The position numbers were made by a program, and so were the translations under genes. This document shows, piece after piece, positions 27,248 to 33,033 of a stretch of 64,000 nucleotides of DNA. The notes beneath the pieces are model-generated. The model was not told the origin of the DNA and made no database searches. It saw nothing but the letters and a program-made list of their open reading frames with translations. Location of the stretch: contig JAANOX010000128.1 in NCBI GenBank assembly GCA_020184695.1, forward strand, positions 62,001 to 126,000. Direction: 5' to 3'. Numbering within the stretch: the first letter of the stretch is position 1; each line of letters begins with the position of its first letter. This DNA comes from Histomonas meleagridis 2922-C6/04-290x (Eukaryota > Protista > Parabasalia).

Positions 27248-27521
27248 AGCACACTCTTTTTATTCAGAATGACTTGAGTAATAAAAATCTTTTCACCATA
27301 AATTTCTGATCAATCTCATTTATACCCAAAAATAAATTAATAATTAAATTTAGCTGAGTACTAATGTTTCATTCATGATGAACTTCGATGCATAGAAGCA
27401 AGAGAAAGAAATAATTGATGATTGGATGTGCGGACGTTTATTTCTGACCAAAAAACGAATGAAAAAGTGGATAAAAGTGACTTCATTTTTGGTGGTAAAC
27501 TTTCGCCAAAAACCGTTTTCA

Positions 27522-28616
27522 ATGAGTGAGAAGCAAAGACTCATCACCAAATATGTAACAAAGCTTAGCCAACCAGTGGCGACAAGTTTTTATCTTCACT
27601 TTCTCCTTAATGAATCTGATAGCTCTGCTCGCCACATGTTAATTAGTAATTTAAACCAAATCTCAGAAGAAACAGGAAACCCTAATATTAACAAATGCGC
27701 AGAAGCTGCCGGAAGTGGTAAGGAAATTCTAGATTATGGGATTTATCATAAAAAAGATAAGGAAAAGAAATCTGATAAAGATGATATCAAAGATGATGTT
27801 TGTATAACTCAAGCAAATGCTCTCTTTCATAAGCTTTATCTTATGGATGCGATTATGGTCTTTAAAAGAGTAAATCCTCAAACAATAGATTATAATTCCC
27901 AAAGAGTTCTTGCTGAATCATACCTTGTTTTACGCCACTACGATAAGTCATTCCGCATTGCCAAAAAATTCAAATTCAAGGATATATTATTTGCAAGTGC
28001 TATTTCTCTTTGCCAATTTGACTTTGCGTATTCTATGCTCAAAGAAATGCTGTACGATCTCCGCAATATCCAACAAAGGAATACTGTTGTTTCTTTTTAT
28101 GATTTAATTCACCTTGCGATGATTATCTGTTTCGCAACATCAACCACACGTGAAACTTCGATTATTTCACAGCGTCTTTTTGCAGCCTCTGAGTTTGAAA
28201 CAACAGTCCTTAATGATCTTGTCACAGATTTTATTAATCGAGATTTTACAAAGTTCATTGGAGAATTAGAAATAATCCGAAGCATCCTTAGTTATTCCAT
28301 CTACACTTGTTATAATGCTGATAAAATCATTCAAATGATTCGTGCAAATGTTGTTGTTAATTACGTGCGACCGTTTTCGACGGTTCCATTCAAAATAATT
28401 GAAAACGATTTATCGTTAACCGAAACCGAAATTATAGCGGTTTTAAGGGAAAAAATTAGAACAAATAAATTAAATGCAAAAATCGATCTGGTCGATAATT
28501 GTTATTGTGGTGGATCAGGAAACACTACATTTTTAGATAAACAGGAAATTTATGTTCGAGCAATTTCAACACATGAAAAATTCTTGCTAAAAGAATGGAA
28601 AAAAGAATATAGATAA
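27522..28616 (+). CDS. PCI-domain protein (CSN1/Rpn7-like)
   Basis: Helical repeats plus C-terminal VNYVRPFSTV...I..K..AKID PCI signature. The ATG at 27522 is preferred over the upstream track start at 27426. Confidence 0.7.
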   Translation: MSEKQRLITKYVTKLSQPVATSFYLHFLLNESDSSARHMLISNLNQISEETGNPNINKCAEAAGSGKEILDYGIYHKKDKEKKSDKDDIKDDVCITQANALFHKLYLMDAIMVFKRVNPQTIDYNSQRVLAESYLVLRHYDKSFRIAKKFKFKDILFASAISLCQFDFAYSMLKEMLYDLRNIQQRNTVVSFYDLIHLAMIICFATSTTRETSIISQRLFAASEFETTVLNDLVTDFINRDFTKFIGELEIIRSILSYSIYTCYNADKIIQMIRANVVVNYVRPFSTVPFKIIENDLSLTETEIIAVLREKIRTNKLNAKIDLVDNCYCGGSGNTTFLDKQEIYVRAISTHEKFLLKEWKKEYR

Positions 28617-29790
28617 TTATTATTAAACATTTCATTATTAAGTTGTTTTTATTTTAAAGTAGGAAATGAGTTAAAATTACTTTTCAATGATTGAACATGT
28701 TATCTGGTGAATCGCAATTTTTTTAACTAAGAAAATTATTCATTTTACAGGAGAATTAACTTCGAAAAATATTAAAAAAAATCGATTAATCAATTGATAA
28801 ATAAGATAATAGTAACATATTATGTATGAACATTTTAAAATTGCTAAGCAACGATGCAAGAATTATATTTTCCGATTGGTTATTTATTGATCAGAAAATT
28901 CGCGCTTTTTTATAGATGAGGATAAAAAACTTATTATTTAGCACATTACAAAATGAATCAAAAATAAACTTAGCTATGACAATGAAACATTATGCAATTT
29001 ACAAGAAATTTATTAAAGATGGAACCTATCCAATGAAAATACAAAAACAATATGAAATGCTTCAGCATTGAAAAACACCAGAAAATTTATTATAAACAAA
29101 TCTTGATGTTAACCATATGATTAAACACTACTTATTAAGATATGATTATCATTATATTAATAATATAAGTAAACAAAATTTCATCTCCATTCATTTATGG
29201 AAAGAAAATTATTTACCATTTCGAGGTACATATAAAGCAATAATTGGATGTCATTTCGAAAATACATCTTTTCATCACAAATTTATGAAAACAATATTTT
29301 TTCCTGTTGAAACAACCATAAAAAAAGCAAGACAAACCGTTTCCTATTTTTGTATGGATTACACCATTAAATTTTTCGTAAATCATTCAATATTTGAGTT
29401 CCTAACTGTTCTCATGGTCGATTTTATGCAGCTTACTCTTGTCTAAGACATAATATGAAATTATCATAAAGAAAGTAAATTTTTGAATGATGCATCTTTG
29501 AAACAATATCCTTAGTTAACAGTATAATATTCTCATTTTAAGTAAGTTTATTTTGTCATTCTTTGAGCATTGAAGCTTCTTTCCTATCGTTTTTAATCCA
29601 CCGTAAATTTTGAATGCTCACTTTTTCAGTTGTTTGAAAGGAACCTCCTCAGAAATAACCCTACATTTTCTTCACAAATTTCAAACAACCACCATTAATT
29701 TTTTCGGTTTCTATGAAAATTGAACAGAATAACGAAAACCGACAATACTAAAGTCTCTCAAAAATTGGGGGTTATTTGCTCAAAGTCACC

Positions 29791-29796
29791 TCATTT
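29791..29796 (+). promoter_or_regulatory. Initiator (Inr) element TCATTT of the Cys-rich micro-gene
   Basis: Matches the parabasalid Inr TCA(+1)Y(T/A), 19 nt upstream of the ATG at 29810. Confidence 0.55.
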
Positions 29797-29809
29797 TTAT
29801 TTCGGTACA

Positions 29810-29878
29810 ATGTCTTCATCATGCTCATGCTCCTGCTCAAGCTGCAAATGCTGTGGTTGTAAGTGCAATCTTCTTTGA
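29810..29878 (+). CDS. 22-aa Cys-rich metallothionein-like micro-protein MSSSCSCSCSSCKCCGCKCNLL
   Basis: ATG...TGA ORF forming a GC island, with 8 Cys in CxC/CC patterns, an upstream Inr, and downstream TAAA plus a T-rich tract. Below the ORF track's size cutoff. Confidence 0.7.
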   Translation: MSSSCSCSCSSCKCCGCKCNLL

Positions 29879-29947
29879 ACTCTTCAATAAAAATCAACAA
29901 CAATAAATTTTTTCCATTCTTTATCAATTTATTCCAAACAAAAGTTT

Positions 29948-32770
29948 TTATTCATTTACAGATATTTCTCCTTTGATAAAATCACTGACAAGATCAGATG
30001 GAACAACGAAAGGTATCAAAAAGCAAACAATATAAGCATCAAATGATAACAACTCAGCATTCTTTTTCTTTGATGTTATAAAATCCATTGAAGGGATCTG
30101 AACAGAGGAAGGTCCGGATGCTGAGATCGGATAATCCTTTGAACTAGGAATCTTCAAACTATTATCTTTTGATTTCAAAGCTAACCAAATCGAACTACAA
30201 AATCCTTCATAATCTGTACTAGTGATTTTTATCTTTTCGCTAAAAGGAGACTGATCCAAATATTGTGAAATATGATTTTTCAATAATTCTTTGTGAAAAC
30301 TTATTATTGCAGCTACAACGCCTTTTGCAAATTTTGATATCTCTGAGAGATCACAAGATGTGTTTTTTTTATCTGTATTTATATTTATGAACTCATTTAT
30401 GAAAAAGTTAATATTTCCTCTAACCTTATGCCACCTTGTTTTCCCTACAGCTTCAGGAAAGTCATGTGCGCTCAACAATTTAATATCATCGAATTTACAA
30501 TGGAAAAATACCGAAAATATTTTTGCCATAGCATTAACAATTTGTATTGATGATATACTTGAAAATAATTTTATCATTACACTAGCTGAGAAATCCCTTG
30601 AAGTGTTAACTCTTTTCGAATCTAAAGTTTTCGAGCTTTTTGCTTCTTCTTTTGCCTCATTCAAATTTTCGGTTTTTTCTTCATTCAATTTTGATTCAGT
30701 AAACTTCACAATTTTTCTTTTTTCAATTTTTATATTTTCCAAAATGTTTTTCATAGCATCTGATACAGATTTCTCTGCATATTGACTTCTAATGAATTGA
30801 AGAGACTCCAATGTTTCTGAGTATATTTCAATTGGCGTTTCATCCAACTTGAATTCTCTAAAAAAAGCAATTTTCTTATTTTGATCGAATGAGAAATCCT
30901 TTGAAACATTTGCGAACATAACAGCCATAGAATGTGATTCGAACTCAGATACAATTGAGATATAATATGGAATTTGACCACGAATATTATATCTTAATCT
31001 TTTAATATTTTGATTTAATTGGTTTTGTATCTCTTCAATTGTTCTATTTCTTTCATAAAAATCATTTAAATCGTTTTGGTTCGACACATTTATGTTAAAT
31101 GGTTTAATTAAATGTGCAGCCATTATTAAACAACGTTTTAAAAATTCGCCGTTAAATTTTATTTCTTTTTCATTAGTTTCAGTTTGGAATTTCCATCTTT
31201 TTAATGAGTTATTATTATTGTCGAAATTTCTTTTATTAAGTTCGATTTGTTTTAAATTCATTTCAAGTGAAAATCCAATGTTATGCGGAAATATTGTTTT
31301 CGTTTGTGTTTCTACATCACGAAGTTTATTTTTACGTAATTCGATAAATATGGAATTCTTTAATTCGATATCTGGATCAATATCGTTAATCCAGTTTTGA
31401 TATTTTTTCATTCTAATTCGCGATAATGAATATTTCGCCCATTTTTGGAAACAATTTACAAGAAAAAATAATTCATAATATCCTTTTAAAAGAAAAATAA
31501 TTTTAAACCCATTCGATGGATGCTGTTGAATTTTTGTGATCATTTCTAATTCTTTAGTCTTATTAATTCGTGATATTTGATGCCATTTTAATAACGTTTT
31601 AGTTAAACATCGTTTTTGATCAAAAATTATTGAAACTTTTGTAAGTTCATTAAAATTAATTCGATTATTAGTATACATATACCAACGTTTCATGATTTCA
31701 TGTAATGTTGAGTTTTCTTGGGATCTAATTTGCGCATATTTATTCCATGCTCTATGCGCTTTATTCATTAAATATCGATTTCGAATTTCGTCACTTTTCT
31801 TTATCAAAAATGTTGATGATCGTGATAAAATTAATAGATTAAATAATGCTCTCTTAACTTTTTTAAATAAGCGAACTTTGTTTGCAAAAGATGCTTTGTC
31901 ATTTTTGCTTTTTTTAATAAGAAGTTTCTTTTCAAGACAGTTCCATTTGATGCTGATTTCTGAGTATTGAATTTTGACTGGATTACGTTTAAATTTTGTG
32001 TAACGATACCAAATTATAAAAATTTGATTCACACCACAAAAAGAAACAGTTTTATGAACTGGAAATTTAATACTTCGTAGTTTGGATCTTTGTTGTATCC
32101 TCTTCTTAGCAATTTGGTTCCATGAATCGAGTATTTTCCTCATGGAACTCATCCATAGAAGATGAATTAGTTTGAATTGATCATTATATGACATTACATT
32201 ACTTTTTTTAAAGGAGTCTGAAATATAAAATAAGAAAAAAGGATTGGAATTAAATTGATCACTTAAAACATTTTCAACAAATTTTTGATATTCTTCTTTT
32301 AAAGTTTCGTTCCTTATGGGTGCAATTAAATGCCATGAAAGAAGTGATTTTCTTAAAAGATTTGTTCTTTCTTTAATTAAGATTTTTCCTTTGGAATTAA
32401 GCATTTGACGATATTGATGCCGACGAAATGCTTGTTGAATTATTATAGCTTCACGCTGCTTAGATTTGTCAAGAACAAATCTATGAATAAATTGTGTAAT
32501 ATAACTTGAATCATTTTTGGTTTCTAATTGTGATGTAGAATAATTTAAAAAATTATCTCTTTTGCGTGATCGTTTTTCAAATGCATTTAACGTGTTTGAA
32601 AGCGAGTCTTTTTTTGTAGAATCATGAACATCAATGTTATTTATTTCAAACCATGAATTTGAAGAAGTTTTCCCATTGAATTTTATGCTTGTTGGACTTT
32701 CGACTTTAGGTTTTGTTATCAATGGCCTTGTTTTCTTTTGCTCAACAATTCCAGGATATTTCTTCTTCAT
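29948..32770 (-). CDS. Large basic protein with an IQ-like motif and Sfi1-like Trp repeats
   Basis: 940-aa ORF; AIIIQQAFRRH (IQ-like); recurring LL...L..W units (LLRKSLLSWH, LMNKAHRAWNK, LTKTLLKWHQ, LVNCFQKWAK). Confidence 0.6.
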   Translation of the reverse strand: MKKKYPGIVEQKKTRPLITKPKVESPTSIKFNGKTSSNSWFEINNIDVHDSTKKDSLSNTLNAFEKRSRKRDNFLNYSTSQLETKNDSSYITQFIHRFVLDKSKQREAIIIQQAFRRHQYRQMLNSKGKILIKERTNLLRKSLLSWHLIAPIRNETLKEEYQKFVENVLSDQFNSNPFFLFYISDSFKKSNVMSYNDQFKLIHLLWMSSMRKILDSWNQIAKKRIQQRSKLRSIKFPVHKTVSFCGVNQIFIIWYRYTKFKRNPVKIQYSEISIKWNCLEKKLLIKKSKNDKASFANKVRLFKKVKRALFNLLILSRSSTFLIKKSDEIRNRYLMNKAHRAWNKYAQIRSQENSTLHEIMKRWYMYTNNRINFNELTKVSIIFDQKRCLTKTLLKWHQISRINKTKELEMITKIQQHPSNGFKIIFLLKGYYELFFLVNCFQKWAKYSLSRIRMKKYQNWINDIDPDIELKNSIFIELRKNKLRDVETQTKTIFPHNIGFSLEMNLKQIELNKRNFDNNNNSLKRWKFQTETNEKEIKFNGEFLKRCLIMAAHLIKPFNINVSNQNDLNDFYERNRTIEEIQNQLNQNIKRLRYNIRGQIPYYISIVSEFESHSMAVMFANVSKDFSFDQNKKIAFFREFKLDETPIEIYSETLESLQFIRSQYAEKSVSDAMKNILENIKIEKRKIVKFTESKLNEEKTENLNEAKEEAKSSKTLDSKRVNTSRDFSASVMIKLFSSISSIQIVNAMAKIFSVFFHCKFDDIKLLSAHDFPEAVGKTRWHKVRGNINFFINEFININTDKKNTSCDLSEISKFAKGVVAAIISFHKELLKNHISQYLDQSPFSEKIKITSTDYEGFCSSIWLALKSKDNSLKIPSSKDYPISASGPSSVQIPSMDFITSKKKNAELLSFDAYIVCFLIPFVVPSDLVSDFIKGEISVNE

Positions 32771-33033
32771 CAAGCATCTGGAATTAACGTGTTTCTATCG
32801 TTATACTAACTTTTTCAGCTAAAAATGCAATTAAATATAAAGAAGCACAACTTGAAAATCGAAAAAAAAAATATTTTTAAAATCCAGTTTTTCACTTTGC
32901 TTTGAATGAAGGTTTTGAAGTTTCACTTTCGAGATAATGCAGAAAAAAACATTAAATTTGTGGTATAAAAAAAGATTAATTAACAATTTAATATTTTAAA
33001 ATATTTTTCAGTTTCATAAAAATATTTTTACAT

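Follow-up and report, generated by a model that had tools for sequence, protein, structure and literature searches.

The stretch of DNA analyzed here, a window of 64,000 nucleotides from Histomonas meleagridis, carries a very short reading frame (hereafter A1) that the initial annotation had singled out as a metallothionein-like micro-gene ending in a CaaX box. This locus raises the question of whether so small a frame is a gene at all and, if it is, whether its product binds metals, is anchored to a membrane by a lipid, or does both. The features that bear on the answer are collected in Table 1.

The A1 frame is present exactly as had been claimed, with 22 codons, 8 of which specify Cys. Upstream of its ATG the frame stays open for 30 codons only and contains no earlier ATG, and A1 is intergenic, lying between two ORFs of opposite orientation. 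Its Cys content reaches 36%, versus 21% for the runner-up among the 667 ATG-initiated ORFs of at least 15 residues in the window. The description of A1 as GC-rich holds relative to the window (43% versus 30%), but not in absolute terms. Since AUGUSTUS, trained on a transcriptome, was the sole annotation method for the H. meleagridis genome (PMC8529796), it is plausible that standard annotation missed a coding sequence of 69 nt.

Table 1. Location of A1, its predicted signals, its paralogues and the GTPase genes compared with them. Coordinates without a prefix refer to the window.
Feature	Location	Strand	Remarks
A1 coding sequence	29810..29878	+	22 codons and TGA (29876-29878); 8 Cys
Putative CaaX box codons, Cys19-Asn-Leu-Leu	29864..29875	+	After Cys17-Lys18; H-Ras-like C-K-C arrangement
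Initiator-like TCATTT	29791..29796	+	Present in the sequence; predicted transcription start A29793
Predicted 3' processing signals	29888..29913	+	TAAA 29888-29891; TAAA and AAATT cleavage-like site 29904-29909; T-run 29908-29913
Conserved, putative promoter block CAAAAATTGGGGGTT	29758..29773	+	~40-50 nt upstream of ATG; common to A2 only
Inverted repeat TTCGGTTT...AAACCGA	29703..29742	.	Arms 29703-29710 and 29736-29742; also upstream of A2
ORF with weak PCI-domain match	27426-28616	+	A1 neighbour
941-aa ORF	29948-32773	-	A1 neighbour, convergent; no Pfam match
A2	C200:36574-36642	-	Peptide identical to A1
B1	C11:548405-548476	-	Type B; 23 aa, 9 Cys, one His
B2	C258:105555-105626	+	Type B; 23 aa, 9 Cys, one His
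A2 neighbour			Low-complexity ORF
B1 neighbour			BspA-type LRR gene
B2 neighbours			Rab gene and unknown ORF
Rab GTPase, complete	L060:617-1234 (C258, ~104.7-105.3 kb)	+	Ends KCGC; same strand as B2
Ras-family GTPase, 188 aa	L097:312-878 (C154, ~28.7-29.3 kb)	-	Pfam Ras, E = 1.3e-51; ends ...PKCKCNIL
Ras-family GTPase, 294 aa	L112:1429-2313 (C113, ~118.1-119.0 kb)	-	Rho-like by eye

Paralogues of A1 and selection on the peptide

The whole H. meleagridis assembly (281 contigs, 43,133,364 bp) was searched for relatives of A1. A translated search with the A1 peptide matched A1 itself and a second copy, A2, only. When 121 nt from the A1 locus were used as a DNA query, the genome returned the locus itself and no paralogue, because synonymous sites are saturated. 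B1 and B2 were found only by means of a degenerate pattern for CKCNLL-stop (six codons plus stop). The four genes occupy dispersed, unlinked and intergenic sites, and their peptides share the form M-S(3-5)-[C/S/K/G/H] core-C-K-C-N-L-L, with an MSSS start and a CKCNLL end in all four. No further member was recovered from the genome with a CC-x-CKC pattern or, among the starts inspected, with an MSSS[S/C] start pattern; the family thus counts at least four members, four being a lower bound.

The coding sequences of A1 and A2 differ at 10 positions, all of them third-codon positions and all synonymous, without a single replacement, while the stop codon is TGA in A1 and TAA in A2. According to the Nei-Gojobori method, 10 of ~13.2 synonymous sites are changed versus none of ~52.8 non-synonymous sites; according to the transition bias assumed, all ten changes would be synonymous by chance with a probability of 1.4e-7 to 2e-6. 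B1 and B2 are separated by seven synonymous changes (pS 0.55, pN 0.05), and the one replacement between them exchanges S-C for C-S (S6C7/C6S7) and leaves the number of Cys unchanged. Comparison of these paralogues within one genome shows that the four peptides are under strong purifying selection, with the last six residues invariant. Since the unlinked A2 encodes an identical peptide with 10 synonymous changes and no replacement, A1 is very likely a real, functional gene and not a chance frame.

The DNA that flanks the four copies has diverged and their neighbouring genes are unrelated; the copies are thus old dispersed duplicates, and neither a repeat element nor an assembly artefact. An artefact of assembly, or a recent gene conversion, is also argued against by the saturated synonymous divergence. 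Among the findings that, according to the initial annotation, would speak against a gene was that A1 prove to be a fragment of a longer decayed gene or of a repeat; the three paralogues, which keep frame, start, stop and C-terminus, argue against this.

The remaining matches to the CKCNLL-stop pattern were attributed to chance and correspond to short frames devoid of Cys, a 49-bp satellite on contig C11, and repeats. The satellite (L065:592-2610, C11 ~445.5-447.5 kb) comprises ~41 copies, and one of its frames reads ...KCNCNLL-stop. As a weak negative, the 52-aa and 47-aa frames around A1 and B1 had three 5-mers in common with no protein of 26-91 aa. One metagenome scan for the codons of CKCCGCKC produced 16 matches, all unrelated or due to chance. 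In two of the metagenome contigs (L009:1193-1216, minus strand, and L014:7233-7256, plus strand), short stop-bounded frames end in CKCCGCKC(N/H)WLL-stop; they have no ATG and no Cys-rich context, and were judged to be chance or alternative-frame matches.

Promoter and 3' signals

The TCATTT described 19 nt upstream of the A1 ATG is indeed present, as are the TAAA and T-rich tract said to follow the gene. Transcription from this element would leave a 5' UTR of ~17 nt without any other ATG. A (T/C)CATTT element is located 12-19 nt before the ATG of all four paralogues, with no intervening ATG, and the distance from Initiator to ATG in Trichomonas vaginalis is 9-20 nt (PMC9222396). At the other end, TAAA occurs 9-14 nt past the stop in all four genes; the rules derived for T. 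vaginalis call for a UAAA signal, AA(0-3)UU cleavage 11-30 nt downstream, and a U-rich downstream element (PMC13515687). The layout of all four copies agrees with these T. vaginalis rules, so that the parabasalid-type arrangement of promoter and poly(A) signals proposed for A1 is kept throughout the family. Not counting its poly(A) tail, the predicted A1 mRNA measures ~115 nt and could therefore escape standard libraries.

Further upstream, the sequences are specific to each type. Alignment of A1 and A2 reveals a common block, CAAAA(A/T)TTGGGGGTT, within which CAAAAATTGGGGGTT consists of an M4-like A-rich motif and a G-run; the position of the M4 motif in T. vaginalis is given in PMC9222396. 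The 12-mer AAWTTGGGGGTT was rejected as a general promoter element, as elsewhere in the genome it falls mostly within LRR coding repeats. The inverted repeat TTCGGTTT/AAACCGA, ~70-105 nt upstream of the A1 ATG, follows a pattern that has 13 matches genome-wide versus 6 for a reversed-pattern control, and is a candidate Myb-like regulatory site. B1 and B2 have in common a different block, TATCGTTT, ~45-55 nt upstream of their starts (L054, L060), which resembles the trichomonad Myb recognition element, TATCGT. The TATCGTTT block in type B and the inverted repeat in type A may thus be type-specific regulatory sites.

The CNLL terminus and the prenylation machinery

For the four genes, the codons for N-L-L are AAT/AAT/AAT/AAC, CTT/CTG/TTA/CTC and CTT/CTC/CTA/CTC, respectively. 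At least six synonymous codon changes have thus left NLL itself the same in every paralogue. In each of the four, C-N-L-L provides a Cys at -4, an aliphatic a2 residue and an accepted X. Leu at position X is preferred by GGT1 and, for some boxes, accepted by FT (PMC1175975). The refined prenylation motif further includes ~11 small, flexible and hydrophilic upstream residues, with Lys or Ser at -1 (PMC1175975); in all four peptides only S, C, K, G and H are found upstream of the box, with Lys at -1, in agreement with this rule. A constrained C-terminus, combined with variable spacing of the central Cys, argues for reading CNLL as a CaaX box, and we infer that it is one.

Two GTPases encoded elsewhere in the genome are informative in this regard. 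The first, a Ras-family protein of 188 residues, ends in the hexapeptide CKCNIL, which is nearly the CKCNLL of the micro-proteins. Together with the invariance of CNLL in the four paralogues, this ending sustains the proposal that the C-terminus is a CaaX-type signal. In the second, of 294 residues, a long acidic linker rich in Asp, Asn and Glu is followed by a ~45-residue tail of S, C, K and G that includes ~30 Cys, without a CaaX box; this tail is probably a massively S-acylated anchor. Homology between the tail and the micro-peptides was considered and rejected, since shuffled sequences attain the observed score in 8-77 of 500 cases and the likeness is compositional only. As the tail has the same composition as the peptides, such strings would serve as C-terminal tails of GTPases in this organism.

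Six full-length genes for prenyltransferase beta subunits are present in the genome (L098-L103, on contigs C279, C116, C214, C200, C50 and C34, respectively). L101-L103 are FTase-beta-like, and L098 and L099 resemble Rab-GGTase beta best; for none of these five subunits, which were compared with solved structures in the PDB, was GGTase-I beta the closest match. The initial annotation had read CNLL more narrowly, as a CaaL geranylgeranylation signal. Its CaaX character is supported, but geranylgeranylation itself is uncertain, because farnesyltransferase beta is the best counterpart of each of the three CaaX-type beta subunits and no clear GGTase-I beta came to light. With GGTase-I beta the nearest relative of none of the five subunits compared, an FTase-like paralogue that has diverged may act on CaaL boxes. 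The genome also contains four Rce1-like genes and five ICMT-domain genes.

We note that the best-scoring ICMT gene (C128:129608-129886) is located on the same contig as A1, 3.6 kb past the end of the window and ~38 kb from A1, and that an FTase-beta-like gene (C200:60265-61227) lies ~24 kb from A2. Both observations were made post hoc, and the proximity is probably a coincidence, since these distances span many genes.

Lipid anchor, metal cluster or both

By composition, the four peptides agree with the operational definition of a metallothionein (low molecular weight, at least 15-30% Cys, CxC, CC or CxxC motifs, and few or no aromatic residues): they are 22-23 residues long with 8-9 Cys, contain CSC, CKC and CC motifs, and lack Phe, Tyr and Trp. 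Searches with the four peptides yielded no metallothionein family, nor any other family, in Pfam at E<=10; in the PDB, no chain matched at E<=10. In addition, the positions of the Cys differ between types A and B and also, as mentioned above, between B1 and B2. The hallmark spacing of a metallothionein beta-domain, which the initial annotation had recognized in A1, is therefore not upheld. Indeed, the potential ligand positions drift while N-L-L is fixed, which is the opposite of what would be expected from a pure metal-cluster peptide. Owing to the lack of a family or PDB match at these thresholds and to the unconserved Cys positions, we do not class the peptides in a metallothionein family, yet they may work like one.

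Taking these data together, we lean, with modest confidence, towards the view that A1 and its paralogues encode prenylated, membrane-tethered polycysteine micro-proteins, in which the other Cys would be S-acylated and/or metal-binding. Cys19 would receive an isoprenoid from a CaaX prenyltransferase in the cytosol; NLL would then be cut off by an Rce1-type protease, and the newly exposed C-terminus methylated by ICMT. The prenylated peptide would lie against a membrane, on its cytosolic side, where the Cys nearby (a C-K-C pair as in H-Ras, and 5-6 more) could become S-acylated; alternatively, they could stay as free thiolates, able to bind soft metals or to buffer oxidants. The role we favour, as a speculation, is that of an "anchor-only" peptide acting as a membrane thiol/metal buffer in an organism without glutathione. 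The CaaX and metallothionein-like readings may be compatible, provided that thiolates of the prenylated peptide stay free where it meets the membrane surface. A composition of 36-39% Cys with Ser, Lys and Gly, and without aromatics, suits a metallothionein equally well. More tentatively, and with a lower probability, the prenylated peptides might form a membrane-tethered polycysteine thiolate/metal cluster, in effect a lipid-anchored metallothionein, perhaps in parabasalids generally. To our knowledge, no free-standing polycysteine CaaX peptide is known in any organism, and the mechanism is without precedent.

Several known systems resemble the proposed anchor in part. H-Ras ends in ...CMSCKCVLS and Rap2A in ...CNIQ, and in Ras-family anchors the CaaX Cys is prenylated while the Cys two positions upstream is palmitoylated. 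The micro-proteins show the same C-K-C-a-a-X arrangement, with Asn at a1 as in Rap2A, and the Histomonas GTPase that ends in CKCNIL provides an example from the same genome. Unlike these anchors, however, the micro-protein stands alone, with its own promoter and start codon, 5-6 extra Cys and no GTPase domain. Cysteine strings, such as those of the palmitoylated cysteine string protein and the SNAP-25 linker, and likewise the polycysteine tail of the 294-residue GTPase, resemble the peptides in their dense Cys runs (CC, CCCC), their small hydrophilic context and the importance of number over exact position, but they are parts of larger proteins and carry no CaaX box. Metal-binding Cys are combined with a membrane location in plant HIPPs, isoprenylated proteins with a C-terminal CaaX box that bind metal through a folded HMA domain, and likewise in DcCDT1, a 55-aa Cys-rich plant peptide that is not prenylated; neither has homology to the Histomonas peptides.

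The main rival is a soluble mini-metallothionein, in which one cluster of Cu(I), Zn(II) or Cd(II) would be enclosed by the 8-9 thiolates, and NLL would have no role in lipidation. This is the picture suggested by a small peptide that is 36-39% Cys, with CxC and CC motifs and, as its other residues, Ser, Lys, Gly and Asn but no aromatic one, and metallothioneins of this size do exist: MMT1 of Magnaporthe grisea has 22 residues (PMC12508003). A1 could thus at most tie with MMT1, and the suggestion that it is one of the smallest metallothioneins holds as far as size class is concerned, but not as a record. Among parabasalids, T. vaginalis has a gene named metallothionein, tvmt-1 (product TvMT-1), that is reported to be induced by Cd (PMC12195773). 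What makes a soluble metallothionein less likely is that, at E<=10, neither a metallothionein family in Pfam nor a chain in the PDB was matched, and that Cys positions shift while the non-ligand N-L-L is fixed under synonymous drift. Two terminal Leu are also atypical for metallothioneins.

The resemblance to MMT1 extends to its Cys-rich composition within the 22-aa length class and to its being a free-standing micro-gene easily overlooked by annotation. Tucker et al., in 2004, are said to have ascribed an antioxidant role to MMT1, reportedly a peptide with 6 Cys and no CaaX end; such a role would parallel that of the thiol buffer proposed for the Histomonas peptides. The latter conserve a non-Cys C-terminus and not the spacing of their Cys, and we detected no sequence relationship to any metallothionein family.

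Less probable again is a prenylated and multiply palmitoylated lipopeptide that would serve as an anchor only, with no role in metal binding, either as an organiser of membrane domains or as a competitor or sink for the prenyl- or acyl-transferases that act on the 416 small GTPases of this genome (PMC8529796). It would share the evidence for the CaaX box with the membrane-tethered polycysteine micro-protein preferred here, and would account for the conservation of Cys number rather than position and for the CCCC runs of type B, which resemble palmitoylated cysteine strings. Such a function is, however, without precedent, and the acylation is a prediction.

That the genes encode the precursor of a secreted, prenylated signalling peptide, which an ABC transporter would export once its CaaX end had been processed, appears very improbable. 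The fungal lipopeptide pheromones of the a-factor type are likewise encoded by tiny, dispersed, multi-copy genes with a CaaX end, their precursors being processed by a prenyltransferase, Rce1/Ste24 and ICMT, and Rce1-like and ICMT genes are present in Histomonas. The known pheromones are nevertheless not Cys-rich, let alone polycysteine, and have a removable N-terminal extension, whereas neither an extension nor a processing site is evident in the 22-aa product. We know of no pheromone receptor, sexual cycle or mating system in Histomonas.

The possibility that A1 is non-functional, either an ORF that arose by chance within simple sequence rich in TGC or the decayed 3' remnant of a Cys-rich GTPase tail, draws on the (TGC)n-like core codons of type B, on the GTPases of this genome with polycysteine or CKCNIL tails and on the position of B2, 216 nt downstream of a Rab gene, but is strongly disfavoured by the exclusively synonymous A1/A2 differences (10/10) and by an ATG, a stop, an Inr-like element and a TAAA that are kept in four unlinked copies. 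A last exon or GTPase-tail remnant is excluded: the Rab gene that precedes B2 is complete and has a CGC terminus of its own, A1 has no GTPase-like ORF before it, and selection acts at the peptide level. The presence of a Rab gene beside B2 is unremarkable: since H. meleagridis has 416 small-GTPase genes among ~11,100 (PMC8529796), one GTPase among eight neighbours would be expected in roughly one case out of four.

As judged from their sequences, the products of the four mini-genes are probably thiol-rich peptides tethered to membranes, a kind that has not been described. If the peptides are made, they would constitute a new class of eukaryotic micro-protein, consisting of a lipid anchor and a cysteine cluster and nothing else, and would join CaaX lipidation with metallothionein-like thiol clusters; few known nuclear genes for a CaaX protein would be as short as theirs. 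AUGUSTUS-type annotation of protists probably misses conserved genes of ~70 nt, and with the invariant CKCNLL end as a simple query, relatives could be looked for in Trichomonas, Tritrichomonas and Dientamoeba. Histomonas is a poultry pathogen for which there is no licensed treatment, which makes its handling of metals and redox stress a relevant part of its biology. For parabasalid parasites, which lack glutathione, the peptides would represent a hitherto unseen membrane-bound thiol/metal buffer, one that might shield the membranes of a microaerophilic cell devoid of glutathione from metals and oxidants.
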